64,000 bases of DNA from Epithemia pelagica (GCA_946965045.2 OX337230.1:4305364-4369363), one strand, 5' to 3'; shown: positions 1-64,000, numbered from the stretch's first letter. Program-made: numbers and translations. The notes: generated from the sequence alone by a model not told the origin.

Positions 1-2863
1 GACCGACTGGTTCTCCACCTCGGCCTTGCCCACGACAAACTGAAAGTTGTACTGCGCAATTTGGGCGTTGCGAACCTTTTTTTGCATGGTGTTTTTGGAG
101 AGATCGACATCGGCGTAATAGCCGGCATCGTGCAGTTGTTGCTGGACCTTTTGACAAAAGTCTCCAAAGTCGGCATGGACGGGAATCAACATGACTTGTC
201 GGGGACTCAACCACAAGGGCCATTTGCCACCAAAGTGTTCGCACAAGACGGCAAACATGCGTTCGACACTGCCCAGCATGGCACGATGGACCATGACGGG
301 TCGAGCAAACTGCTGTCCATTTTCCTTCCCATCTGTCGTGTATTGGAGATCGAATCGGATCGGCAATTGGAAATCCAGTTGGATGGTGGCACATTGATGC
401 ACACGTTCCATGGCATCCATGACCTTGATATCAATCTTGGGTCCATAAAAGGCACCATCTCCGGGATTGACTCTCCAACTCCCCTTGCCCGAGAAATCGT
501 CCATGGCATTGGCCAAGGCCTTTTCGGCCCGTTGCCAGAGTTCCAATTCTCCCAGGGCCTTGGCGGGACGAGTGGACAACTCCAACTTGTACGTCATACC
601 AAAGGTGGTGTAGACGGATTTCATAAAGTTGAGGGCACCCAGCACTTCGGCTTCAATTTGATCTTCGCGACAAAAAATATGGCCATCGTCTTGTTGAAAG
701 CGACGGACCCGTGTCAAACCGGTCAAGGCCCCCGAAAGTTCATTGCGATGCAAGACGCCAAAATCGGCGTACCGAATGGGCAAATCGCGGTAGGACCGGA
801 TCGCACTGGCAAACATGAGGCAATGACCGGGACAATTCATGGGTTTCATGGCCCATTCCTGGCCCTCGACTTCAAAGCTAAACATGGCATCCTTATAATG
901 CAAGGCGTGGCCGGACTTGTGCCAAAGATCGAGATTGAAAATGTTGGGTGTAATGATTTCATCGTAGCCGCGTTTCCAATAATGGGACCGGATGAATTCG
1001 ACCAGTTTATTGTAAATCCGAGCTCCATGCGGAAGCCAAAAGGCACTGCCGGCCGACAATTCGTGAAAGAAAATCAAATCTTGTTTGGCCGCAATCCGAC
1101 GATGGTCGCGTTCTTTAGCCTGTCCCGCACACACAGTCCAGAGAAAGCAAACAAGAGAAAGAGAATCAAGGAAAAGAAAGAGACAATCCGGTGAGAGGAG
1201 AGATACACCATCCGTAACCGAAATTCTGCGCGCAAGGGTCTACAATCGCACAACACACAAACACAAGAGTGTGGAAAACTCAGAAGAATCAGCGGAAATG
1301 GATAAGTGTGTATCAATCATGACCAAGCATGTTGGTTCTGAGAATGAGATTCGATACAGTTTGTTTCCTCATTGCTTCCCCCACGACATGCACGGTGCCT
1401 CGATTGGTAATGGTCCTTGTTCTGATTGTTCGTGGTCGTCGTACCTTTTCTTGGTTTTCTTTCCACACGGTCAAGAGTTTTTTATCGGGAAAGCTAATGC
1501 CATACATGCGTTGGAGAGAGTCATTGTTGGTATCGCCCAACCAATTGGTGGCGGAATGTCGAATGGCGGCAAAGGCCTTGACCTTACCGGAATGCGGCAA
1601 ATGCGGACCGCGGCACAAGTCAATCAAATCGCCACAGCGATAGACCGTGGTACGAGAGCCGTCGGGCACCTTGGTTTTCAATAGGGAAACCTTGAAGGGA
1701 TTGTCGGCAAACAATTCGAGGCCTTCTTCTTTGGTAATGACGAGACGCTCAAACTTTTGTTTTTGCTTGACAATCTTGGTCACTTCCTTTTGGACAATCT
1801 CGTCTATATTAGAGGAATCGGTAGTATTGATATCAAAAAGTAGAAAAAGACAAGCAACAATAGAAACAAACCAACAAACAAGTCAAGCGTGTGAGTCCGT
1901 GCGGTTCGGAACTAGAAAGAGAAGTGGTGGCAATTGGTTTGTCTGCTTCGTTCCAGTATACCTACAATCGTCTTCCCGAAGGGCATCGGATCCCATGAAA
2001 GAATCGTAATAAAAGCCACCGTCAAGCGGTGGTCCAATGGTGAGTTTGGATCCATAGGAATGTTCCAAGGCTTCGCCCATGATATGTGAGGAGGAATGCC
2101 AAAAGACGGTCGTGGCATCCTTGTCTTGACCAAACTTGAGAAATTCCATCTTGGCCACCGGTCCCACCAACGGACGGGTCATGTCCCACAACAACGTCTT
2201 TTGTGGAGAACCATTGGCGGCCGTGTCCGATTCTTGGTCTTGTGCTGGTTCGGCTTGTTCTTCGGTTTCGCCCATGGCATCGAGCATCATATCGACTCCT
2301 TCCATCCCATCTTCCCAAATGGAATAATCGGGCACAAAGGACGAGTAGGTGACACGTGCCACAACGGCACTGTCGGCCAATCCTTGACTAATGGATTGGG
2401 CGACATCGACGGGGGACGTTTTCCACGCCAAAAAGGGTTCCTGCGTCTTGCTGTGTTGCGTCAAGACGGTACCATCGGGTAGGGTAATGGCAATGGGAAT
2501 GGCTTGTTTCGTCTCGAGTTCGACTTGACGACGTTGGGCAATCGTCTCGTAGACCGCCAGGCGGTCTTTTAACCAGTCGGGATTTTGGGTACGACCCGGA
2601 AAGGAATCTCCCCCAATATGAGTTTGTTGCGAGGCATCCATTTTGGGACCACTGCCCGCCTTGGCACGACGGCCTTGTTGGCCACCAGCAGCCGAAGCAG
2701 CCGCAGTACTTTTTTGCTGGTTGTTGTTGTTGTTCGAGACATTGGGCTCATCCTTTTCGAATGTCGGTTGAGTGACACCGGGATAGTCCAAGACGGCAAA
2801 TTTGCGCGTGGCATTCATGGAAATATCCTCCTGTTTCTTGGCACCATTTTTGGGTTTGCCCAT
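1..2863 (-). CDS. TARS: Threonyl-tRNA synthetase, cytosolic type; 3 exons visible, 3' end outside the window
   Basis: ATG at 2863 (MGKPKNG). TGS-like ITLPDG, editing-domain [12 protein letters not shown] and DLCRGPH, core [35 protein letters not shown] introns at 1804-1965 and 1120-1444 join the frames (DDY/EIVQKE; QEK/AKERDH). Confidence 0.95.
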
Positions 2864-3341
2864 GGTGACAGTGTATGAGAGAGAGAAAGAGAGAGAGAGA
2901 CTGTTTGTAAATAGATTGCAATCGAGCGAGATTGGGAGAGTGCCGTGCCGTGCGACGACCAGAATCGATCCAACCAGCAGCACACTATAAAGAGAGAGAA
3001 AGAGAGATTGGCAGCAGAGTCCAGTGTCCAATAGAACAGAGAGAGAGCCTCGAAACACGCGGCCACAATGGGATAAAGTCTCCAACACACAAACGTGCAA
3101 GAGAACACACGGCTGATCCGATGAATGGATGCGAGAGATCGAAAGAAGCGCGGGTCTGCAACTTCCGGTAATGGACTCAAAACGTACGAAATCTTTCTAC
3201 TTCTCGGAGTATCGTCACGATAAAACAACCGTTTTCATATAGCGTTATCACACACCAATATATCTGATATGATCATATTAGACACAGATTCTTTCGATAT
3301 GAGGCATGCATCCCGAGTCACGGATGTCGGGGGACATTGTA

Positions 3342-6900: not shown

Positions 6901-8511
6901 CGAAATGGCTCTCCAAGTTTTGGATCAGCTCGACTGTCGTTTGCCCAAACGAGGCAAGCTCTTTCATGTCCTGCGCGGTATTTTGCAAATGAAGGCGGAC
7001 ATGAGAAAGCTGGGTCCCAATGCCATTTTGTCGCCGGACCAAATGTTGGATACCAAAAAGATTCAAGCCATGATCATGTTGTACAAGCTTTCCACGTCGG
7101 CCTATGTGGAACGGTCTCTCTATTTGCCCTTGTCCATTTTAAAAAGTTACCAGTGGAGTGTCCAATATGGCATGTCGGAATACTCACCCGCCAACTTTGC
7201 TCTGGTCGGCCTCATTCTCATGTCGACCCTCAAGGTACGTGGGGATGGTGTGTGGTTTGTGTTTTTGTTGTTGTTGTCATGGATAGATATGTTTGTGTTG
7301 TCATGGATGGCTTGTATACACAAATGTACGTGTGTGCGTTTGACTTGACGGTGCGACAAACTTACACAATGGCACTCTTTCTTCCAGGATTATGACAAGG
7401 CTCGGATTTATGGCGAGTTTGCGGTTTCCTTGGTGGACTTGAAACAAGAATTCGAAGTGGCCAAATCTCGTACCATGTTCATTGCCCATGAATTCATTCT
7501 TCATGCGTCCAGGGCATACCAAACATGTCTCAAGCGATTTTTGGAGGGCTACGAGAGCGGTTTAACAACCGGTGATGTGGAGATGGCGTCGTGGAATATT
7601 GTCATGTATCTTGAAATGTCCTTCTTGATTGGTAAGAGCTTGCCGTCTCTAAACGAAGACTGGGACTTTTATACCAAGCAAATGAAATCGGTGAGGCAAA
7701 TGCAACAGTACAATATTGCCACCAACAAGTGACAAGTGGTCTTGAATCTCATGGGTCACTCGGCGGACGCCAACGTGTTGAAAGGTACAGTCTTTGACAT
7801 GGATGCCTTTACCGAAGAATGGGCCACGAAAAAGGCTCCTCCACCAGTCGTTATTTCGACATTTTATGCGAGAATTCACCAGGCGTACTTTTTGTGCAAC
7901 GACGTGGAGGGTGCCGAAGCCGTACTAGCCCTGCATCGACAATATGCCGACGAGGATATGAATCCGGTACGTGAAAAAACCAAAACACCTGAGAGTGGAA
8001 AAGTGGCGATTGCTGCTGTTTGTTGTTCCAACACGTAATGGTTCACTCTGCTTTCTAGGGGGCCTTTGTGGACGATGGTCGCCGTGCTCATTCGGCCGTA
8101 CTGTGTTACTCCGCCGCACGGAGAACCAATAAGAGGAAATATCTCTCGCAAGGTCGGAAATCGCACCGTCATATACGGGTGATTGGTCAAAAGGGCAATC
8201 CCAATTACGCGCATCTCGAAAAGCTTTTGGATGCCGAATACGCTGCTCTTCGAGGACGAAAGCTGATTGCCAAGAAATGCTACCAAGATGCTGTGACATT
8301 GGCGGCCAGGAGCGGGATTGTACACGAACAAGCGGTGATTAATGAACGATTTGGAGATGGTTGTGGAGATTCAAGCGAGGCGCAATACCGCTTCAAATGT
8401 GCCATTGATCTGTACAAGGAGTGGGGTGCCTTGGTCAAGGTCGACTTGGTGGAGCAAAAGCTTTCTTCCTGTATGGATCAAACAGAAATGGGTCCTCGTA
8501 TCGGTGGATGA
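3933..8511 (+). pseudogene. STAND/AAA ATPase with helical TPR-like C-terminus (COG3899-like 'multi-sensor kinase' ATPase family), disrupted
   Basis: Walker A GESGVGKT, Walker B VLVLDDLQWAD, KTYGNPFF, YSWVHDKIQEAA. Introns 7235-7387 and 7967-8058 restore the frame. In-frame stops at 6797 (TAA) and 7730 (TGA, in NK*QVVLNLMG). Frame change between ~6108 and 6280 (intron or indel). Start codon uncertain (3933 or 4140). Confidence 0.75.
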
Positions 8512-18410: not shown

Positions 18411-20823
18411 CCACAAACACAAACCGCAACTCGCTTTTCGCCTTGTTCGATGGCCTCTTGTCTCATTTGCGCAAACAAGGCCGCAATGTCGGGTCGGCCA
18501 AACTTGAGACCTGATATATTGTGCAGAGTTGGCGCGTCTCTGGACTCGGTGAGATAGATATCAATATCGACCACATCGCCTGCTCTGGTCAGGTTTGGTT
18601 CTTGAGTTGACCCTGCTTCCTTTTCTAGATCCACCTCTTTGGTCAGCGCTTCCATGTGTTCATCTTGGTCTTGCTGGTTACTCATGTCAGAGACACTGTC
18701 ATCCGTTGCAACTCCATCCTGCAACTCTTGGCTCCTCGTGTTTGCATCGTCACGCTCCTCGTCTACAAATGGACCAGCTCGAGAGGCATCATCTCCAGTG
18801 CTCAGTGCGTCGGAAGCCGGGCCAACCGTTCCGTCACTCCCCGACGTACTAGCAGTACTGGACAAGATAGAACTCAACATTCCAGGGAAGTGAAACATGC
18901 TTTCGATACTATCTTGTGCTGCTGCATCTTGTTTGGGGGAGTAGGATTCTGGTACTGGAACAACATTGTCCTCCTCCTCGTTCTCCTCGGACCGGAGCAA
19001 GGTCTTTTTGAACATTAAGATATCGCTGCTCTCGTACAAGCCGTCCAGTTCCTCGTCGGTTTCTTGACTGGGAGGAACTGTGGCCAGAATTCGAGAAGCC
19101 AACGAGGGGGCACACTCGGAGTCCTCCATACTAGCAGTACTGCACGCCTCCTCGTCCATCATTCGCTCCTCGTCGTCTTCGATGGTCATCATGCGCTTGC
19201 TTCCATGAAGATTGGCCGACAAGTCGGCCACTTGCGACTGGACCATGAGTTCGGGATCTCGTTGAATCCATACAAACTTGAGCTTTTTCAATTGTCGGCG
19301 ACCCTCTGTTTGTTCGTGAAGCAAATGAGACAGCAAGGATTGCAGTGGTGTTACTAAACGATCCACAGGACACGGCAAAAGGGTTAGACAATCGGCGGGA
19401 ATGGACAAGAATGACAACAAAGATGGTCTTGCAATGACACTTACGTCCGATCCCACCACTAAGAAGCATAAAGACTGCACAAAAGCCAGAGAAGAACTTG
19501 TGAGTTGTACAACTGTGCCGATCTTGGGCATGTTGCATTCGGACAAACAAACGTACCCTTGTATCGTTCGGGACTCGTCACGTCAATGGCAAAGTTTCCA
19601 TAGGGTCCTTCCAGCAACATGTCAACTTGCGTCTTTTTCATGGCGAGCTTGTGCAAGGCCATGGTCCAATCCCCTGCGACTCGGACATGAATGGTAACGA
19701 CCGATTCGTGTGGGGCACTGCTCAGAGAAAAGGGATGCCATTCCCAGGCCGACAATTCCGGAATGGCCAAATACACTATAGGTATCGCAGAGCATTCAAG
19801 AGATTCAATACAAATGAGCTTTCTGGCTGTGGTATAGGAGGACACCAACAAACAAGCAACCAACACACAGGTATCGTACGTACCGTATTGTCCTGGATTA
19901 AAGTCAAATCCGGCAACCTTGGGGAATTCCAATTGGACCACCGAATCACTCACAATGCGCAAGGTGACTTGTCGTGGATAACGGTATCGGGCCATGAAGA
20001 GTTTTCGCAGGAGCATATCCATACCAAATGTACAAAAGACAAATAAGGGAACCACATAACCGGTATGGAACAGACTGGCAACCACAATACCCACGAGCAT
20101 GAGCAAATGAAGGAGATAAAAGACTTGAAAGACCACTTTGCGAATCCAGGGCAAGGAGGTGACCATGAGGCCCACCACAACGACCAACATCATGGTGCCG
20201 GATGTATTCATGGAATTGGATTGGAGCAATTCGTGTATAATGGAGGAGGAGGAAGATGAATGCTGTGGTGAGTGGTAGTTGACTTGAAAGTGGGCCCAGG
20301 TATGAAGGAGACCGGTAAGGACGGCGAGATAACCCGCCAGTTTGTGATAGGGGATGGCTCGATAAAAGGGCAAACCAAGGAGGAGGGTCAGGTACGAGTT
20401 TTTTTGGGCCAACAACAAGGCGGCAAAGACAAAGGCGCGCGAAATTTGACCGGTAATGGACACACTGGGATTCCACCAGGTATAGTAGACTGCCATTGCC
20501 AGGAGGACCGCAAAGGGGAGGGCCAATAGGACTTGGCCATAGGTCAAGTAGATGCGAAAATAATACAAGAGGGGATTGTGTCGAATGCGTTTGAGCAAGG
20601 GATAGGAAAGAGTCCATCGCCAGCTATACCACTTGTGAATCCAACCGTCGGCATTCGTCAGACAAGAAGGGAAACAATCGTGCAAGACAAAGTAGAGAGG
20701 AAGAAACTCCAAAGCAGGATGGGAATCGTTTGGATGTGGGTCGATGACTTGCTGTCTTGGTGTTGTTTCTTCCACCGTTTCCGTAACAGGATCGTTGGTT
20801 GGCAAGCACGGCATGGCTGGCAT
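18317..20823 (-). CDS. Ferric reductase/NADPH oxidase-like flavocytochrome, copy 3 (multi-exon)
   Basis: Same motifs and intron positions as copy 2; all four putative heme His retained; ends FDFHQESFG. Confidence 0.85.
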
Positions 20824-41103: not shown

Positions 41104-44100
41104 TTATGATGTTTTCAACCCGGACGTCAATGCAAAGAGTGCTTCTAGTGTGGACACCCGGGCCCGTACATCTGCTCCATCCAGGTCATGACCACCACGA
41201 GGTTCAAAATGCATCAAGACATAAGGGGCTGTATTGACGGATTCTCTGGTTCGTAGTTGTCTCAACTTGTTACCGTAGACAAGTGAATGCCAAAATGGTA
41301 CGGATGCGTCATCCAGAGATGATATTAACAGAATACGGGGAACGTGATGGACAGAATCTGCAAGCGTCAATTCGTCGCTCCTCGGTTTCAAACTTGATAC
41401 GGGACAGAACGAGCGAATCAAATCGGCTGCACCATTATCGTTGTCGAGGAGCGGATTCCCAAACTCGTCCCAATCCTGTTGCGAGAGATGTAGGTCCTTA
41501 TTCTTCAACGTTTCCTCTACGTTCAAAAAGGCATTGGTCAAAATGGCTGCATCAAACAATTCTGGTGGACGATTCAGAGCACTAGCTACGACCATTCCCC
41601 CTGCCGAAAAGCCCTTGGCTGTAATCTGGATCCTCTCGTCTCGATGAAATATTGATCCATGTTTGTCACCACAGTCATTGGTTCGAATGGCTTGAGCACA
41701 GGCAATCAAGTCCTCAATGGCATTGGGTTTGTTCGTTCGACGGCCTTGTTCGTGCCAGGATTGTCCCAATTCGCCACCACCACGAACATGCGCAAAGGCG
41801 AGTACCAAACCCCGATCTAGCAAGGGTTGCCAGGTGGGATTGTAGGTCAGGTCTAGAGACACGCCATAACAACCATAGGCGGTCAACAATACGGGTGTCG
41901 GTGAAGTCGTGCTGGGTGGGTCCTTTGTCCAGTCTCGTTGCTTCCGGATCAAGGTCAAGGGAACAAGAACACCATCGTGACTGGGAACCAGGACACGCTT
42001 TTGCAACATGCACGGATTCTTGTTGTCGGTTTCAGTACGGGGAGTAGTTTGGCCAGATTTGGATCCATGAATCCTTGACTCGTTGTTGGGGGGAGGATAT
42101 TCGTGCACCTGTCGAGAGGGGACGTGGCATTGAAAGATGCGTTTTCTTTGGACTGGACTTTGTACGGCAAACCAAAACGAATCCAAATGACTGCATCGAC
42201 TGTCGCCCACTGGAGAAATGACGCAACACTTCAAAGTCTGGTCGTTGGCCTTGTCGTCCTTGCTCACCCGTAGTAGGCTCGGCAATGGGACCGCCCATTC
42301 GTTCGAGTCGTCCAAATTTGACGACCGGAACAGGGAACGACCCGAAGTTGTGGGTGTCCGTCCACACTGGACTGCTCATACAAGACCACAAAGGTTTGGT
42401 AAATGTCCACTTGGACGAGTACGTACCCCACGGCTGCTGTCAAACAGGGCGCTTTTCGCAAAAACCAATCATGAGACAAGAGCAGTTCGGAGTAATGCGT
42501 GGTCCATACCGCCAACTCCTTGCTACCATCACCATGATTGGGAGCTACTACCCACACAGTGTTTGCGTCGTGGTCATTCTCCAAAGGTTCGACTTCATCA
42601 TAACTTGTGTCATCGTTCTTGTTCTTGTTGGTATTGATACTTGTACTGCGACGACCTACCGACGACGACGACAAAACCTCCACATGGTATCGAACCCATG
42701 CTTGTCGTGGTTGGACCATAATAGGCGGTTCCTCCAGGTCGGTCATCAAGTAGCACTGGTTCGAATCCAAGGTTTCTACCTGGAGTACCACCACTCCAGA
42801 AGCTTTGGTACCATATAGTTCCAGTCTGTGGGACAAGTCATGATCGTGATGAATCAATCGTGGGGGAGACGCCGTTACACTTTCCAGAGCTGGTGTTGTT
42901 GTAGTAGTTTTGGTGGTCCTGGTTGTCGTCACGGTACATCCATATACACCGTAAGGGCGATTGTCTTGGTACGGATTTGTCACAGTCCAGACCAGTTGGT
43001 ATTGTTTTCTACAGGACGAAGAAGCAGTGTCGTCATTGTCGTTTGGATTGCGAATCGGCCCGCAAAATTCCACCTGGCCTATACTGCTTTGTAGTGCGTC
43101 CATGTCCTCGTTCTGGTCCGAAGTGTTGTTCTCTGCAGCATCAACCCGAGGATGGATGATACGATGATAGATATCGCTACCAATAGGATGCACCCATAAT
43201 TCAGTGGTGGTTGTTGTAGCTTGTTGCGGTTCTGAGTCTGACACTTGTACAAGATAGGCCACCATGGTTTCGTCGGCGGACACCACGACACTTTGTGGAA
43301 GTATGACCTGATTGCCATTGGGATGTTGTTGATGTTGATATCGTAGATCCAAGACCGTTTCCATGTTGTCAGGATTGCTTTTGTTGTTCTGATGGTGGCC
43401 GTTCTTGGTGCCCCTTTCGGGTGATTCCAAAGTCTCGGTGTCGGTGGGCCATCGTTGATAGACAGATCCATGCGTTTCGGCGGCTGCTGGTGGATGATTC
43501 TTGTGGCTGATCCATTGGTACCAATACCTTCCACTGGGTCCCAAAAAGGGAGGAGGTGATTGTTGTGTTACAATCGATGTGTGTTGGTGTACGGCGTGTT
43601 GAATTTCGTGCTGAATGGAGGCAAACAGCGGGTGTGTCATCATTACACGAGCCGTTTGTTGCACTTCGTGACGGATCACAGTTTGAATAGAAGTGTCGCA
43701 GGAATCCACAGAGGAGTAGGGACGATGAAATTGTTTTCGATGGCCGGAATTCCAATTCAATTTGTCGAATGGCGAGGAGAAAGAGGTCGTCCTTTGGGTG
43801 GTGAAACTTCGGAGAGACGTAAAATCGTCAAGTCCAGAGATCGTGGTCGTTCGCCTTGCCAGTCTCGAGGCAAATTTCTTGGACCACAACAACAAGTAGT
43901 AGTGCTTTTCACATGATCTCAATACCGACCAGGAACAGCGTCCACCACTGTAGCACAACGACGACGAAAACATTCTGCTCCTGTACACGACGTCCTTGTC
44001 AAAGGGGCTCCACCATGAGCACAGCACCACAATGGCTCCAGACGCTGAGTTAATCTGTAGAAAAACTCTTTCTTTCACAATCAAAAAGTGTGTGGTTCTC

Positions 44101-57100: not shown

Positions 57101-57930
57101 CGTTGGCCTATGGAATTTTGTTCAGTTGATTCTTTCTTGCATCTTGATTTTGCTTGCGATGGCCGCAAAATGGAGAATGACAAGTTGCGGGTGTTCGTTG
57201 TGACCCTTGCGTTAATGCAAATCTGCTGGGGCCAGTGATGTTCGATATTTTATCCAACAACGAGGTCGTTTCTTGGTTTACTAGCTCTGTCTCTGTCTAC
57301 GGAATCCACCCTGTGGGTTTGTTTGTTGAGGAATCATATTTGCACAAACAATGGTGTTGTTTCTTTGCAGTGGTTCATTTGGTAATCAAGGCATTGGTTT
57401 ACTCGTATGGATGGTTGTCTCAGTATCGTCAAGGAACTGAGCATTCTGTTCTTGAGTTTGCGCATCAACGCCAGATCCAGGTTCTGCTTGGGCCCGTCTC
57501 TTTGAATTGTTGGCTGTCGGCCAGAATGCGCTCAAGATGTTCCCCTTAACGGCCGTGGTTTCCCGAATGGAGAATGTAAGCTGTTAGTGTCGCCTTGCCA
57601 TGAGTTCTCAGTACTTGGTTTTGCTTCTGTGGTGTTGCTCGCGATTTGATGGTCTTTGATGTCGACCATTGTTGGCTGACGTAAGATGTGGTAACGAGAT
57701 TCAGGGGACTTGGTTGTTTCTCTTGCTCCCAAGCAACAAGTTCGGCAATGGTGGTGGAAATCATGTCACACGTGCATGTCTTGATTTAATCCGATGAATG
57801 CATGAGCGCCCTTTGATCGAGATTTGTCGAGGGTTTAGATTTTCCTGAACCCACAAGTTCGGAACATGGAGTCCAGTCTTGCTCTCGTCAAATGACAAAT
57901 GACATGCTCATAGAGTCAGAAGGTTTTTGT

Positions 57931-58490
57931 GACCCTAATAGTTTTGCTAGGAATTGACCTTTTTCCGGTGCGCACTAAGTTCACTCTGTAGAATCACATG
58001 CGCGACCGGAAAAAGGTCGATTTCAAATCACTGTATTGCTGCGTGCTATATTTAGTGCGACCGGAAAAAGGTCGATTTCGACCGGAAAAAGGTCGATTTC
58101 AGAACCTACATTAACTCTCCATAGTAAACCATATTCCTTCTTGTCGCTCAAAGATTTTGAGGTGAATGATCTCTGGTGTTAGGGCCTTTTCAGTTTTTGA
58201 GGTGAATGACCCTAATAGTTTTGCTAGGAATTGACCTTTTTCCGGTGCGCACTAAGTTCACTCTGTAGAATCACATGCGCGACCGGAAAAAGGTCGATTT
58301 CAAATCACTGTATTGCTGCGTGCTATATTTAGTGCGACCGGAAAAAGGTCGATTTCGACCGGAAAAAGGTCGATTTCAGAACCTACATTAACTCTCCATA
58401 GTAAACCATATTCCTTCTTGTCGCTCAAAGATTTTGAGGTGAATGATCTCTGATGTTAGGGCCTTTTCAGTTTTTGAGGTGAATGACCCT
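57931..58490. repeat. Two tandem 277-bp units containing iterated GACCGGAAAAAGGTCGATTT motifs
   Basis: Units start at 57931 and 58208. Each unit has three forward motif copies (58004, 58059, 58080; +277) and one inverted copy (57952-57969; +277). Confidence 0.95.
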
Positions 58491-58567
58491 CTTTAGGGCC
58501 TCTTTTTTGGCTGCAAAGGGTCATACGTCCCAAACCTATTTTGACCATAGGAACGACAACAGCCACC

Positions 58568-61500
58568 ATGGAGTTTGACGATTACTTGGGGCTTGTGGAC
58601 TTTGCCACACCCTGTGGCTTGGTCTGTAAACTCTGTGGTGTTGGTTTCCGAGCAAACATGAAGTGCCTTGCTCGTCACGCCAAGACTTGCTCTGAGGTTC
58701 ATGCAGTGTCATTTCGGTTCCCTGGAAGACATCTTGGAAAAAAGATACACGACTTGGTGGAGAATGCCAACAACCAACCGTTTGATTGTTTCATACACGA
58801 GTCCAAGGAAACAGATATCAAGTATTTCTGTGGTCACTGTGACAAGATGTTTCACAAGAAGCTTTTGTGCGAGAAGCACACTGCTGGTTGTTGCAACAAT
58901 GCTGAAGTGATTCCGAAGACCTTCCACAAGCTGAAGTGTGGATGCTTCATGCCAAGGCCCCAAAGAGAAACCATGCAGCAAGAAACCAACTGGACCCCAA
59001 TAATTCAAGTTGAGAATTCAACATTTACCATGCCGCTGCCCTGCAGCAGGTTACCCAACGAGTTTGCAAGTTCGATTGAACCATTATTGCATCCAAGCGA
59101 CACTTTGGGAAGGTGGCCCGATGTACTGAGTAATATGATTCCTGGCACGTTGGAGAATGCCCTTGGAGACATTGAACAAGGAATTATGTTTGAAGCCGAG
59201 TATCATAAGAGAGGAAATAACACTGCAATCAACCGACTCTATCAGGTTGGTTGTTACCTTCTGGACAGGATGGCTTCGATCGTAATGGGGATTCCAGCAG
59301 ACATTCGGAGTCGGATTGCTAAGTTTGCATTCCATGATGGTGATGTGGATCACTCATGGAATTTCAGCCATCGACATGATTATGACAAACGAGTGAAACC
59401 TCTACTCCTCTCTCTCTTGTGTTTCCTGCATCAGAGGCAGTGGAAGAGATGGAACTATTTTTGCCGCCAGGTTGAAGGTGATGGATTCTCTGTGGACACT
59501 GCATTCCAAAATTGTGTTCTTGGGTCACTCCTGACAGAGTTGGTACTCGACAGTGAGATTTCTTGTTGGTCCGACTCAGGGGTAGTGTTACTGTTCTCTC
59601 GGCAGAGGTTGTTCACTAAGACGAAGAATGGCTTGAGGTTGAAATCATGTGGAGTTGCCGCTCAAGAACTCGGTGAGTCCCCCTTTCCCCCTATCAATGA
59701 ATATACTTGGTTGTTCAAATCTCATGTCTTCTTTCATCTCTTTCTAGCTGACCTTTTACATCTGCTTCGCTGTGGGGTTGCGGCTGGCTTAAAATACTAC
59801 GATGGGCAGGGCAAGTTGGTCGAGCAGGTCATGGAACGGTACAGACATTGTCCTACAATACACTTTCTCTGTCCTAAGATTTATTCTTTGAGGAAGCAAT
59901 ATCAAGAGAAGCCTCCTAAAAGGGAGGTTGTGGTCGATGAGTTCTTCAATATCATTGTTGATGGACATGCATTCCAAAAAGCACATTGGTCTAAGGTCGT
60001 TCCTACGGTTGTGGAAAAGGCCCACGGTATTTTTGATGCATGCTTTGTCGGAAAGGCATACGAGAAATTCCTCTGCTTAGATGGTGACTTGACTATTGTG
60101 GAGTGGTCCAAGGGTTTGGGATCGCTGCCAGATGGTACCAACACACAAGATTTGGAATGCAAGGAACTGGTGAAAAGTCAGTTCGAACGACTAACTGCCT
60201 TGATGGAATTTGCCATCCATGGTTTTGGCTGTGGTGCAGATCGGTTCTCAGAGGTCCATTGTCTCGATGTGACTCAGCTTCGGTGGAAAAATACAAACTA
60301 CCAAGATTTATATGTTTCTGCACCGAGTCGTAAACAACCCAAACTGCAAGCTTATGATCGACCCCCCGTTGAACACAAGATGCCTCGGATCATAGCAAGG
60401 TGTCTATTTCTCTACAGAGTTGTGGTGCTGAAAGTTTGGAATGGGCCAAATGCAAGGAGATTTTTTCCACAATATGGTAATGACCGGAGGTTTTTCTTTG
60501 AGGATGTTGCCCAAGAGATTTTCAGCTTGGATAGTCGTCCTGGTTCGGTGGTTGTTCGACAGTTCTGGACTTCTCTTGTGAACTTGCTCTTTCCAGACAG
60601 CAACAGTCAGGCATTGGTCTCTTCAACAGCATTGAGTGAGTTGAGTAAGCACTCCCAACAGACTGCAATGTCCAACTACCAGACACGCGTGAGCAACAGT
60701 CATGAGATCTACTATGCCCGATTTCATCGTTACATCGGTACCAAATGTATGATCGTGGACTCGGTATGCCATCAGCTGACAATAACAAGCCGTCAGCATC
60801 GGTTAGAAGCATTACGATTGTTGTTGGGTGATGAAGAAGCAACATTCCGAGGCAATCAAGAAACAGCAATTGATATGTGCACCAATTCACCGGGAAGACA
60901 TAAACTTATGCTTCAACCTTGTGGATCGGGCAAAACCATGAACATCTTGGTGCGTTGTGTGGTGGAATCCATTCGAGGACTGAAGACTTCGACCAACATG
61001 TTTCTTGTGCCCTACAACTTCTTGGCTAGCTATCAAATGGTCAAAGTCAAAGCCTTCTTGGAAAAGGCATCACAAACTTTGGGTTTGCATGATGGTTTAT
61101 GTGTCGAGATGTTGGCAAAGAACGATCTATGTCATGAGAATTGGCCCAACTGGTTTGCACGGGATGACTTGCCCGAAGTCATAGTGATGACAATCGATGG
61201 ATTTGCGACCTTCTTCAAAGACCATCTAACAAAACTTTCTGGATGGTGCTCCAATGGAAAGTTGAATGGGATTTTTGTCGATGAGGCACAAACCATCGTT
61301 ACAGAGGTCGACTTCCGTCCATGCTATTCTTGTCTACGGGAAATATCTGCACTTGGAGTCGCCGTAACACTGATGTCTGGAAGTATTTCGATGAGTTTTG
61401 GTCAGAAATTGATGGACTTCCTCGATTTGAGTGGTTCTGCATATCACGGATTGTCGGATTATCTCTCGGGAGAGAACCCAGTTGGTGATGGATTCGACTT

Positions 61501-62443
61501 ACATGTGAGATATGTACAAAAATCTGTTGGGGCAGATGTCGTTGACATTGTGACTGAGAAGACCATGCGACATGTCCACGTGATTTGTGCAAGCAAGGAT
61601 ATGGTTTTGGAGGTTTATGAAGCACTGTGCTTATCTCATCCTGGCTTGAATGTTGAGAAGTTAACTTCGGAGAGTGAACAACAGGTTAGAGATGGCGTGG
61701 CATCTTCCTGGGCAGACGGTACTACAAATATTCTTGTGGGAACGACCTGTACCTTGGTCGGTAATGAGAATCAAAGATGCAGAACAATCATGATCATTGG
61801 CATGTTGTATGATTGCTCAAATGTTGTACAGTCCATGGGAAGACTAAGGCCGTCACAACGTGGAAATAATTCTTCTGTCCATATTCTAATCCCGTTTCAA
61901 GACTTCAACAATGATGGGGCAATCCGGGTAAAGACTAAGAGACGTTTGGACTATCTGAGAGAAATTGGTTTGCTCACGAATGAGGAAAGCCTTGACTGTG
62001 TTACTGACTGCTTCACAATGCATGGATTGAAGATGTGGTTGACTAAAGAGGGATGTATGAAGACAAACCTCTGTCGTTGTTTCGAATATCATACAGAACA
62101 CCAGTGTGGGCGGTGCACCAACTGCTGGAAAGGAATTCTGTGGATATATGATGGAAATTCAACCAGTGACAATGACGGCATACGAAAAAGACATGCCAAA
62201 GATATTGAGCAAGGTGGCCAAAATGTGATACGAAGAACACCCTTGGAACCAAGTACAATGTCTAAAAAAGCTATTCCATGTGCTACCGGTGCTATACAGC
62301 CACTTGCTAAAAAAGGTCGGGTTCCAAATCCATATGCAACACAACGAAACAAGTTCAATGAAGTGCAAGAACATGGTCTTGTACGACGAGAGAATCAAGT
62401 AAGGGAGAACGTCTGGAAGGAAAAGGCAAACGAAAACCTTTGA
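58568..62443 (+). CDS. Telomere-linked protein: C2H2-like Zn fingers + tyrosine-recombinase-like region + RecQ-like SF2 helicase
   Basis: ATG at 58568 in GCCACCATGG. CKLC..H and CGHC..H fingers. Helicase motifs QPCGSGKT, FVDEAQ, LMSGS, QSMGRLRP, and a RecQ-type Zn region C...LC...CGRCTNC. Likely in-frame 75-nt intron at 59673-59747. Transcribed toward the telomere. Confidence 0.8.
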   Translation: MEFDDYLGLVDFATPCGLVCKLCGVGFRANMKCLARHAKTCSEVHAVSFRFPGRHLGKKIHDLVENANNQPFDCFIHESKETDIKYFCGHCDKMFHKKLLCEKHTAGCCNNAEVIPKTFHKLKCGCFMPRPQRETMQQETNWTPIIQVENSTFTMPLPCSRLPNEFASSIEPLLHPSDTLGRWPDVLSNMIPGTLENALGDIEQGIMFEAEYHKRGNNTAINRLYQVGCYLLDRMASIVMGIPADIRSRIAKFAFHDGDVDHSWNFSHRHDYDKRVKPLLLSLLCFLHQRQWKRWNYFCRQVEGDGFSVDTAFQNCVLGSLLTELVLDSEISCWSDSGVVLLFSRQRLFTKTKNGLRLKSCGVAAQELGESPFPPINEYTWLFKSHVFFHLFLADLLHLLRCGVAAGLKYYDGQGKLVEQVMERYRHCPTIHFLCPKIYSLRKQYQEKPPKREVVVDEFFNIIVDGHAFQKAHWSKVVPTVVEKAHGIFDACFVGKAYEKFLCLDGDLTIVEWSKGLGSLPDGTNTQDLECKELVKSQFERLTALMEFAIHGFGCGADRFSEVHCLDVTQLRWKNTNYQDLYVSAPSRKQPKLQAYDRPPVEHKMPRIIARCLFLYRVVVLKVWNGPNARRFFPQYGNDRRFFFEDVAQEIFSLDSRPGSVVVRQFWTSLVNLLFPDSNSQALVSSTALSELSKHSQQTAMSNYQTRVSNSHEIYYARFHRYIGTKCMIVDSVCHQLTITSRQHRLEALRLLLGDEEATFRGNQETAIDMCTNSPGRHKLMLQPCGSGKTMNILVRCVVESIRGLKTSTNMFLVPYNFLASYQMVKVKAFLEKASQTLGLHDGLCVEMLAKNDLCHENWPNWFARDDLPEVIVMTIDGFATFFKDHLTKLSGWCSNGKLNGIFVDEAQTIVTEVDFRPCYSCLREISALGVAVTLMSGSISMSFGQKLMDFLDLSGSAYHGLSDYLSGENPVGDGFDLHVRYVQKSVGADVVDIVTEKTMRHVHVICASKDMVLEVYEALCLSHPGLNVEKLTSESEQQVRDGVASSWADGTTNILVGTTCTLVGNENQRCRTIMIIGMLYDCSNVVQSMGRLRPSQRGNNSSVHILIPFQDFNNDGAIRVKTKRRLDYLREIGLLTNEESLDCVTDCFTMHGLKMWLTKEGCMKTNLCRCFEYHTEHQCGRCTNCWKGILWIYDGNSTSDNDGIRKRHAKDIEQGGQNVIRRTPLEPSTMSKKAIPCATGAIQPLAKKGRVPNPYATQRNKFNEVQEHGLVRRENQVRENVWKEKANENL

Positions 62444-62833
62444 CAATTGCGAGAAAAGTGTTTCTACTGCCATACCCCAGGGTGTAACGGTGTTGACTGT
62501 CGAAGTGGATCATGCTTTGATTGTGGTGGTATACATGGTCGAGGTGAGATTTGTGTACTTCGAAAACAAAAACAAGGGCATAAGTACGTATATGTGAGTC
62601 CAGAAGGAAAGGAGTTCATGACTTGGGTCGCCACACATCGCAAGGCATGCTTGGGTTGCTTTGATCCAGCTTATAAAGGTGGTGTTTGTGCTCATCCATA
62701 TCGAAAGCGAATCAAGAGATTGATTTCAGAGCATGCTGAAAAAGAAAAGTGTTCCTTCATAGTTGCATTCAAGAAAATCTACCAGTCACAGTCGGAGATA
62801 GTTCAGTTTTTTGGCCACCTATATTCGAAATAA
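62444..62833 (+). other. Cys/His-rich in-frame continuation of the helicase ORF beyond a single TGA
   Basis: ENL*QLREKCFYCHTPGC...CFDCGGIH...C...CLGC...C is in the same frame as 58568-62443. Confidence 0.6.
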
Positions 62834-62859
62834 AAATTGTTCAATTCAGACTACTATTA

Positions 62860-63494
62860 TTTTGAGTGTGAATTTGAGTGCGATGTCGATGTGCGAGATG
62901 ATGCGCAAGTGGTGTGTTTTGAAGGTATTTGAATGGTCTATCTATTGATGTTTTGCGATTTTTGTTCATCAAGTGGGAAGGTGTGTTTCGTGCTATGCGG
63001 ACTTGGTGTATAGTGTTGTGGATTTTGTCGTCTTGTGTTTTGAGTGTGAATTTGAGTGCGATGTCGATGTGCGAGATGATGCGCAAGTGGTGTGTTTTGA
63101 AGGTATTTGAATGGTCTATCTATTGATGTTTTGCGATTTTTGTTCATCAAGTGGGAAGGTGTGTTTCGTGCTATGCGAACTTGGTGTATAGTGTTGTGGA
63201 TTTTGTCGTCTTGTGTTTTGAGTGTGAATTTGAGTGCGATGTCGATGTGCGAGATGATGCGCAAGTGGTGTGTCTTGAAGGTATTTGAATGGTCTATCTA
63301 TTGATGTTTTGCGATTTTTGTTCATCAAGTGGGAAGGTGTGTTTCGTGCTATGCGAACTTGGTGTATAGTGTAGTGGATTTTGTTGTCTTGTGTTTTGAG
63401 TGTGAATTTGAGTGCGATGTCGATGTGCGAAATGATGCGCAAGTGATGTGTCTTGAAGGTATTTGAATGGTCTATCTATTGATGCTTTGCGATT
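62860..63494. repeat. Subtelomeric tandem repeat, 178-bp unit, ~3.6 copies
   Basis: Units start TTTTGAGTGTGAATTTGAGTGCG at 62860, 63038, 63216 and 63394; G/T-rich on the plus strand; last unit truncated. Confidence 0.96.
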
Positions 63495-64000
63495 TTAGGG
63501 TTAGGGTTAGGGTTAGGGTTAGGGTTAGGGTTAGGGTTAGGGTTAGGGTTAGGGTTAGGGTTAGGGTTAGGGTTAGGGTTAGGGTTAGGGTTAGGGTTAG
63601 GGTTAGGGTTAGGGTTAGGGTTAGGGTTAGGGTTAGGGTTAGGGTTAGGGTTAGGGTTAGGGTTAGGGTTAGGGTTAGGGTTAGGGTTAGGGTTAGGGTT
63701 AGGGTTAGGGTTAGGGTTAGGGTTAGGGTTAGGGTTAGGGTTAGGGTTAGGGTTAGGGTTAGGGTTAGGGTTAGGGTTAGGGTTAGGGTTAGGGTTAGGG
63801 TTAGGGTTAGGGTTAGGGTTAGGGTTAGGGTTAGGGTTAGGGTTAGGGTTAGGGTTAGGGTTAGGGTTAGGGTTAGGGTTAGGGTTAGGGTTAGGGTTAG
63901 GGTTAGGGTTAGGGTTAGGGTTAGGGTTAGGGTTAGGGTTAGGGTTAGGGTTAGGGTTAGGGTTAGGGTTAGGGTTAGGGTTAGGGTTAGGGTTAGGGTT
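63495..64000 (+). repeat. Telomere (TTAGGG)n
   Basis: Uninterrupted TTAGGG array to the window end, with the G-rich strand running 5'->3' toward the end. Confidence 0.99.

Follow-up and report, generated by a model that had tools for sequence, protein, structure and literature searches.

Genes for telomere-linked helicases (TLHs) were recognized decades ago in yeasts, in fungi that are pathogens of plants, and in a choanoflagellate. Tlh1 and Tlh2 of S. pombe, Magnaporthe TLH1, Ustilago UTASa, the corresponding genes of Fusarium, Botrytis, and Monosiga, and the Y'-Help1 helicase (YRF1) of S. cerevisiae are all telomere adjacent, outward pointing, and present in multiple copies. Published accounts give TLHs a common architecture of two C2H2 zinc fingers, a TLH domain, and then a RecQ helicase, a scheme repeated in a 2022 preprint; in these accounts, the function of TLHs is undetermined, and the TLH domain is treated as a domain of unknown function. 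Here, we describe the last gene before a telomere in a stretch of 64,000 nucleotides from Epithemia pelagica (GCA_946965045.2, OX337230.1:4305364-4369363), which we refer to, as a whole, as the window. This gene has exactly the published TLH architecture, and its host is a diatom, whereas the literature that we searched reports TLHs only from fungi and one choanoflagellate.

Like its fungal counterparts, the diatom gene encodes two N-terminal zinc fingers and a domain of the same kind as the TLH domains (approximately 250 to 340 amino acids) immediately upstream of a RecQ-type helicase, and it shares with some TLHs additional C-terminal Cys/His motifs. The middle domain and the fungal TLH domains are only approximately 10% to 12% identical in structural alignments, which places their kinship at the level of the fold. 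With high confidence, we identify the gene as part of a TLH-family element in which a domain of recombinase/topoisomerase IB fold is joined to a RecQ helicase. In the literature that we searched, which covers subscription journals only to a small extent, we found no paper on diatom TLHs, and TLH or Y' helicases were nowhere tied to tyrosine recombinases or topoisomerase IB.

Results

Predicted fold and active site of the middle domain

The domain between the zinc fingers and the helicase comprises residues 385 to 724 (59720 to 60739; this and all other features of the gene lie on the plus strand) and corresponds in position to the TLH domain. An AlphaFold model, fold searches, and the invariant columns of its family lead us to conclude that it belongs to the tyrosine recombinase/topoisomerase IB superfamily and has a predicted active site of five residues. 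The relatives on which this analysis draws came from an exhaustive HMMER search of 1.8 billion representatives, which yielded 180 relatives at E values below 1e-3. Most of these are 1,000 to 1,600 amino acids long, the part that they have in common is residues 393 to 729, and the helicase follows the middle domain in all six of the full-length relatives scanned. A word-indexed homologue search with the middle domain returned only one 98% copy, and a profile of the domain plus the helicase retrieved only three proteins.

Modeled from its single sequence, the domain gave a poor AlphaFold prediction (predicted local distance difference test score [pLDDT], 38.6). Based on an alignment of 66 sequences and without templates, AlphaFold2 returned a mean pLDDT of 91.4 and a predicted template modeling score of 0.84, and the modeled stretch used for the fold searches was residues 385 to 745. 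When 48,161 PDB representatives were searched with VIA, which is independent of Foldseek, the best seven matches were all tyrosine recombinases (Z scores of 8.4 to 9.7, with 141 to 201 residues aligned), including XerA, XerH, a staphylococcal integrase, XerD, and Cre. Type IB topoisomerases came next, at Z scores of 7.1 to 7.7, and the other rows matched only the N-terminal three-helix bundle. Rescoring of Foldseek candidates gave 36 chains with Z scores of at least 8 and up to 9.8, tyrosine recombinases throughout among the matches listed, with Cre residues 132 to 341 aligned to model residues 81 to 321, colinear ranges that favor equivalence of the active-site residues; Ndc10 and QRICH1 were among the weaker ones, at 5.2 to 5.3. 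The majority of the top 50 Foldseek matches in the PDB were Cre, Xer, Flp, TelA, or topoisomerase IB. A shape search of the ESM Atlas returned an Ascomycota cluster (template modeling score, 0.52) together with Phage_integrase clusters, and the language-model neighbors included integrase clusters and a ResT/TelK cluster. The tyrosine recombinase fold that an initial annotation of this DNA had postulated is thus what the structure prediction returned.

The same model links the diatom gene to the telomere-linked helicases. Its best structural matches among reviewed proteins were the regions preceding the helicase in eight yeast Y' helicases (YRF1; E values of 6.5e-6 to 8e-4), followed by XerS and XerD, and residues 610 to 1083 of S. 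pombe tlh1 also matched, at an E value of 0.03. The connection to fungal telomere-linked helicases suspected in the initial annotation therefore holds at the level of the fold. Clusters of the AlphaFold database yielded two close entries and then many annotated as helicase or C2H2 protein, one entry carrying the automatic name "Tyr recombinase domain-containing."

Each motif of the proposed catalytic signature was found where it had originally been placed: GCGADRFSEV at 60227 to 60256, with Arg at 60242 (R559); LRWKNT at 60278 to 60295; SRKQPK at 60326 to 60343, with Lys at 60332 (K589); VVVRQFW at 60548 to 60568, with Arg at 60557 (R664); and SKHSQQTAMSNY at 60644 to 60679, with His at 60650 (H695) and, precisely nine residues further on as had been noted, Tyr at 60677 (Y704). 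The 66 aligned sequences, which are 19% to 32% identical, have six invariant columns, and five of them are R559, K589, R664, H695, and Y704, the very residues that had been named in the initial annotation. Among approximately 150 representatives sharing approximately 25% identity, counting those that span each column, R559 is kept in 135 of 138, K589 in 137 of 137, R664 in 122 of 126, H695 in 117 of 117, and Y704 in 113 of 116. The rare exceptions are single substitutions (R to H, Q, or W; Y to C or H), a pattern that, judged from the sequences, would be typical of decayed copies.

Three residues before R664, where the HxxR motif has its first His, the family has L, T, I, V, or R and never His, in line with the earlier remark that this position is not conserved. 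For this reason, we file the domain under the superfamily and not under the phage integrase family proper. R-K-R-H-Y is the pentad of type IB topoisomerases, represented in the vaccinia enzyme by R130, K167, R223, H265, and Y274. Cre, XerC, XerD, XerH, XerA, Flp, lambda Int, and the type IB topoisomerases of vaccinia and human have the same catalytic-domain fold as the middle domain, and they share an order of an Arg helix, a Lys beta hairpin, a second Arg helix, and His and Tyr nine residues apart. The secondary structure of the model follows the recombinase core accordingly (helix, Arg, strand, Lys hairpin, strand, helices, Arg helix, His, Tyr), and local alignments made with hhalign place R559 on R148 of XerD and R173 of Cre, and K589 on K201 of Cre. 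The distance from the second Arg to the His differs, with 31 residues in the diatom domain versus approximately 23 in tyrosine recombinases. Unlike these enzymes, the diatom domain is fused to a helicase, matches no curated profile, and has a target that seemingly consists only of CC(C). We infer that the domain is catalytically active.

RecQ-type helicase and gene architecture

The helicase, which Pfam and a family profile place at 60800 to 62125 together with a Cys4 zinc-binding module, is of the RecQ type within superfamily 2. Pfam recognized DEAD and Helicase_C in the protein and RecQ_Zn_bind weakly (E value, 0.43). A helicase profile built from 43 family members matched RECQL5 in the PDB across its entire extent, zinc module included (6e-25), and E. 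coli RecQ at 5e-19, as well as BLM, WRN, and RECQ1, all of which ranked above DEAD-box proteins. Superfamily 2 motifs I (Walker A, GSGKT, 60923 to 60937), II (DEAQ, 61280 to 61291), III (SGS), and VI (QSMGRLR, 61829 to 61849, conforming to QxxGRxR) are all present, as is the Cys4 module (62072 to 62125), whose four Cys are invariant in the helicase alignment. Since motif II reads DExQ in 13 of the 43 family members and DExH in 29, the DEAQ of the window copy is a normal variant. Beyond DEAD and Helicase_C, Pfam gave no match to an RQC winged-helix or HRDC domain, and these domains are absent from some RecQ helicases.

The gene starts with an ATG at 58568 and has an open reading frame to 62440 that encodes 1,291 amino acids; the open frame itself begins upstream, at 58541. 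A pattern scan located two zinc finger motifs of the form C-x2-C-x12-H-x4-C at 58625 to 58690 and 58829 to 58894 (residues 20 to 41 and 88 to 109), the last ligand being Cys and not His, and residues 85 to 137 weakly matched a CTCF zinc finger (E value, 0.019). The initial reading of the gene as encoding zinc fingers and a RecQ-like helicase is thereby borne out, as is its position: it is the last gene before a TTAGGG array that runs from approximately 63497 to the end of the window at 64000, and it points toward that array. The proposed extent of 58568 to 62833 stands in part, in that the frame does continue to 62833, but in the window copy it is interrupted by a TGA at 62441 to 62443. The stop severs a Cys/His-rich C-terminal tail of approximately 130 amino acids, which follows in frame at 62444 to 62833.

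In all element-bearing contigs of three public runs, which are DNA-like in character, position 62441 is C (CGA), with no joint or gap there, and two diverged paralogues align through it in a single frame. The gene is therefore intronless, and the CGA-to-TGA nonsense change is private to the window copy. These same observations led us to reject a 60-nt GT..AG intron at 62399 to 62458 that would have removed the TGA in frame. An ENA assembly contig (L005) is 100% identical to positions 41446 to 63342 of the window; it thus comes from the same organism and provides no independent check of the stop. In two of the diverged families introduced below, B and C, tblastn alignments stay in frame across the Cys/His tail.

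A homologue of 1,607 amino acids (P0011) has, after its helicase, a stretch at residues 1431 to 1587 with a subthreshold match to PF20515, a Tet-like 2OG-Fe(II) oxygenase (E value, 2.6e-4; 21.5 bits versus a cutoff of 27).

Copies, leader, and junctions

The element occurs many times in its genome. Word depth in the three public runs, which is not a true copy number, is approximately 1,500 to 3,000 over 58066 to 61400, 63 to 78 over 57900 to 58065, and approximately 400 over 61700 to 62860; this pattern fits many copies, most of them without the telomere-side part. The window holds one copy, and no relic copies were found elsewhere in it. A contig representing another end of the same organism (L001) has seven, which belong to three families with 25% to 50% identity. 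They are stacked at this end, mostly as stumps without their telomere-side part, and the same satellite and a telomere follow.

Every unit starts in the same way. The seven units of L001 begin with CCCTAAG (at 436, 2348, 6379, 9642, 12745, 14313, and 15074), and the window unit, whose start reads CCCTAAT, begins with CCCTAATAG at 57933 and again at 58210, so that all eight unit starts examined have CCCTAA. The CCCTAA(G) start amounts to one inverted telomere unit. The family C gene (L001 6379 to 9639) lies on the opposite strand relative to its CCCTAAG start, so that it is the terminus, not the gene, that determines how a unit is oriented; in this family, telomere-side truncation takes away the N terminus of the protein.

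Junctions could be tested where an intact relative was available, which was the case for three in L001, one in L001 versus the window, and three at contig loose ends. Each of these seven has its joint at CC, CCC, CCCT, CCCC, or CCCTAA of the target. The donor side was never shortened in approximately 11 junctions and was always the start of CCCTAAG. We found no description of the CCCTAAG joint or of stacking on C runs in the papers that we searched. Copies truncated at 58582, 60698, and 61825 are followed directly by TTAGGG repeats, which indicates ordinary healing of ends. At a loose end at 61626 (runs X1 and X2), a truncated copy gives way to a telomere-like tract of very short length, TAAAGTTAGGGTTAGGGTTA, beyond which the DNA is unrelated; the arrangement resembles an interstitial telomere seed that a later addition has buried.

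The start of the window element is a leader of two units. The first, of 277 bp (57931 to 58207, plus strand), begins with GA-CCCTAATAG, has CCCTAA at 57933 to 57938, and forms the centromere-side boundary; the second, which here takes in the 5' untranslated sequence as far as the ATG, spans 58208 to 58567 on the same strand and contains CCCTAA at 58210 to 58215 and GACCCTCTTTAGGGCC at 58484 to 58499. Tandem Repeats Finder reports a period of 277 with 2.0 copies and 99% matches over 57930 to 58490. The match to the other end, at 9640 of L001, starts exactly at the 57931 boundary, and just inside it the word depth climbs from approximately 70 to approximately 3,000. The first unit is either the stump of an earlier unit or the product of a tandem duplication at GACCCT. 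This GACCCT, the duplication point of the 277-bp unit, lies inside an imperfect inverted repeat at 58473 to 58534 (18-nt arms, 78% complementary, 26 nt apart) that brackets GACCCTCTTTAGGGCC upstream of the ATG, and the same GACCCT is also where one or more other copies meet a different family (loose end at 58215).

Between 57956 and 58371, the leader carries eight copies of a 15-mer, GACCGGAAAAAGGTC, with arms of 5 to 6 nt inverted around an A-rich spacer. Each unit has four, one inverted and three direct: 57956 to 57970 (minus strand), 58004 to 58018, 58059 to 58073, and 58080 to 58094 in the first and 58233 to 58247 (minus strand), 58281 to 58295, 58336 to 58350, and 58357 to 58371 in the second. 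All eight matches fall in the leader, and none is expected from 100 shuffles. We consider these sites candidates for binding by the protein that the element encodes. Positions 58208 to 59167 of the window and 9640 to 10600 of L001 belong to sister copies that are 96.6% identical overall, and their differences are clustered. A GG-to-AC change is shared by all four GACCGGAAAAAGGTC sites of one unit in the L001 sister, and of the 75 coding differences, 52 are found within the first 200 codons, the zinc finger region, where synonymous and nonsynonymous changes are both raised. This clustering suggests either a site-and-reader module that covaries or a mosaic of two subfamilies.

On the telomere side, 3.5 copies of a 178-bp satellite (62860 to 63490, plus strand) separate the gene from the terminal TTAGGG array (63497 to 64000, plus strand). 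The satellite is 82% to 90% identical to an array at 19691 to 22386 of L001, and the phase of the satellite at which the TTAGGG array begins differs between these ends, which erosion into the satellite followed by healing by telomerase would be expected to produce.

The arrangement extends to Fistulifera solaris, in which two homologues (P0088 and P0143) both have the pentad; no other gene separates either of them from a TTAGGG tract, at which each points. Homologues are thus multicopy and telomere adjacent in the window, in L001, and in F. solaris, as opposed to internal housekeeping RecQ genes. At one F. solaris locus (L007), a single CCCTAA at 8214 precedes the telomere-linked homologue by 1.8 kb; at the second (L006), neither CCCTAA nor TTAGGG was found between 7000 and the terminal tract. 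The fixed start may therefore not be general across diatoms.

Discussion

The unit described here opens with a CCCTAA(G) start and a leader in which palindromic sites are iterated; one large gene comes next, followed by a 178-bp satellite and then the telomere. On the whole, we lean toward the explanation that this is a TLH-family element whose protein, of recombinase fold and RecQ type, spreads it by joints that the enzyme makes. Taken by itself, the proposal that the element's enzyme makes the joints seems to us plausible, if slightly short of an even chance, and that the middle domain mobilizes the element is likewise something that we infer. In this scenario, the recombinase-like domain would cut after CC(C) on the strand whose 5'-to-3' direction leads to the chromosome end and would retain the 3' end as a phosphotyrosine. 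The end so held would be joined to the 5'-OH TAAGG... strand of a CCCTAAGG donor unit cut between CCC and TAAGG, whereupon the receiving end would gain the donor unit plus its telomere, and the sequence beyond the cut would be lost. The fused RecQ helicase may unwind or branch-migrate the donor, with replication completing the single-strand transfer. The net result would be a selfish, possibly end-repairing cassette that spreads among chromosome ends.

Several results weigh against this proposal, or against the assignment of the domain on which it builds. Targets and donor share only CC(C), and classical tyrosine recombinases require a matched core. Host joining or priming mediated by microhomology would likewise leave 2 to 6 nt of it at the junctions. 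We saw no reciprocal product and no free or circular form, and no empty site was found that would reveal a CCC target at the left junction of the window element. The window copy carries a stop before its C-terminal tail, and the depth from which many copies are read counts words and not copies. As to the domain itself, it lacks the first His of the hexad seen in classical recombinases; as His is never present at this position in the family and R-K-R-H-Y is the type IB pentad, we consider this concern answered. Comparisons of sequence profiles returned nothing: no member among 66 matched Phage_integrase or its relatives in Pfam at E values up to 10, a profile search of the PDB with the middle domain gave no match, NCBIfam gave none for residues 378 to 744, as was the case for Pfam and PDB sequences, and hhalign comparisons with XerD and Cre were not significant, also with a shallow XerD profile. 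The single E values of the Foldseek matches in the PDB are weak, at 0.1 to 1.

The most serious alternative is that the cassette is spread by the host, through pathways that might include break-induced replication, end joining or priming at microhomology, and gene conversion in subtelomeres, whereas the domain makes no joints and is a topoisomerase IB-type swivel or nicking module serving RecQ at telomeres. By analogy, such a protein might act in telomerase-independent maintenance in the way that RecQ-Top3 pairs or reverse gyrase combine both activities. The pentad without the first His is the type IB pattern, and type IB topoisomerases are within reach of the model at Z scores of 7.1 to 7.7. 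The variation of the junction microhomology between 2 and 6 nt is that of microhomology-mediated joining, and the copies healed by TTAGGG at 58582, 60698, and 61825 speak of ordinary erosion and repair. However, the donor nucleotide is invariant: units begin at the CCCTAAG start without any donor-side deletion in approximately 11 junctions, for which host microhomology pathways would have no reason. Break-induced replication, for its part, should put joints inside homology and not at a fixed unit start. The iterated palindromic sites beside the terminus likewise argue against this explanation, which we regard as rather unlikely.

It is very improbable, in our view, that the domain is a catalytically dead relic used for DNA binding or oligomerization, like yeast Ndc10 or the Crypton-derived QRICH1, in what would then be a subtelomeric RecQ paralogue. 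Both proteins do appear among the weaker structural matches (Z scores of 5.2 to 5.3), integrase profiles match none of the 66 members, and the activity of the domain is a prediction. Nevertheless, 97% to 100% of approximately 150 representatives at approximately 25% identity retain the residue at each of the five catalytic positions, the Tyr nucleophile among them, and a module that only binds would not hold exactly R, K, R, H, and Y. We dismiss as extremely improbable the notion that the likeness to recombinases is a chance motif match or a modeling artifact, since, despite the weak Foldseek E values and the single-sequence model with its pLDDT of 38.6, the template-free model reached a pLDDT of 91, VIA, Foldseek against the PDB, and the ESM Atlas agree on tyrosine recombinases, as do the rescored Foldseek candidates, and residues that had been picked by eye turned out to be exactly the invariant columns.

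The element that we propose, a TLH cassette with a recombinase-like enzyme, has partial parallels in other systems. Cryptons are likewise DNA elements of eukaryotes, present in stramenopiles, that have a tyrosine recombinase and no reverse transcriptase. They encode only the tyrosine recombinase, and families have been reported from diatoms and oomycetes; their insertion sites are internal, and they are not known to have a helicase or to be bound to telomeres. In contrast, the domain of the diatom element is fused to a helicase, and its copies were seen at chromosome ends only. Pfam scans of the protein and of 66 members gave no match to the Crypton-derived families. The telomere resolvases TelK, TelA, and ResT belong to the same superfamily and act on chromosome ends as well, but they make covalently closed hairpin ends, whereas the diatom ends are ordinary TTAGGG arrays, and nothing suggests hairpins. 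Helitron Rep-Hel, the RecQ-Top3 dissolvasome, and reverse gyrase share the logic of cutting and rejoining coupled to unwinding. This is an analogy only, as their cutting enzymes are unrelated (HUH nuclease or type IA topoisomerase).

These findings extend the TLH family to diatoms, and the assignment of the middle domain gives a testable mechanism for the multiplication of such cassettes and for their movement between chromosome ends. A fusion of a recombinase with RecQ would be a new enzyme architecture, with a possible use in directed DNA end joining. We put forward more tentatively, and with some doubt, that the TLH domain of all TLHs, including Y'-Help1 and Tlh1/2, may be an active strand transferase of the tyrosine recombinase/topoisomerase IB type and that TLH cassettes may constitute a distinct and widespread class of mobile elements that copy themselves, together with the telomere, onto C-run sites of other or eroded ends. 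The assignment of the domain also suggests that the amplification of Y' elements in telomerase-deficient yeast may draw on an enzyme that the element encodes, in addition to the recombination of the host. If the TLH domain is indeed an active strand transferase, chromosome ends would have an enzyme-driven, telomerase-independent way of being rebuilt.

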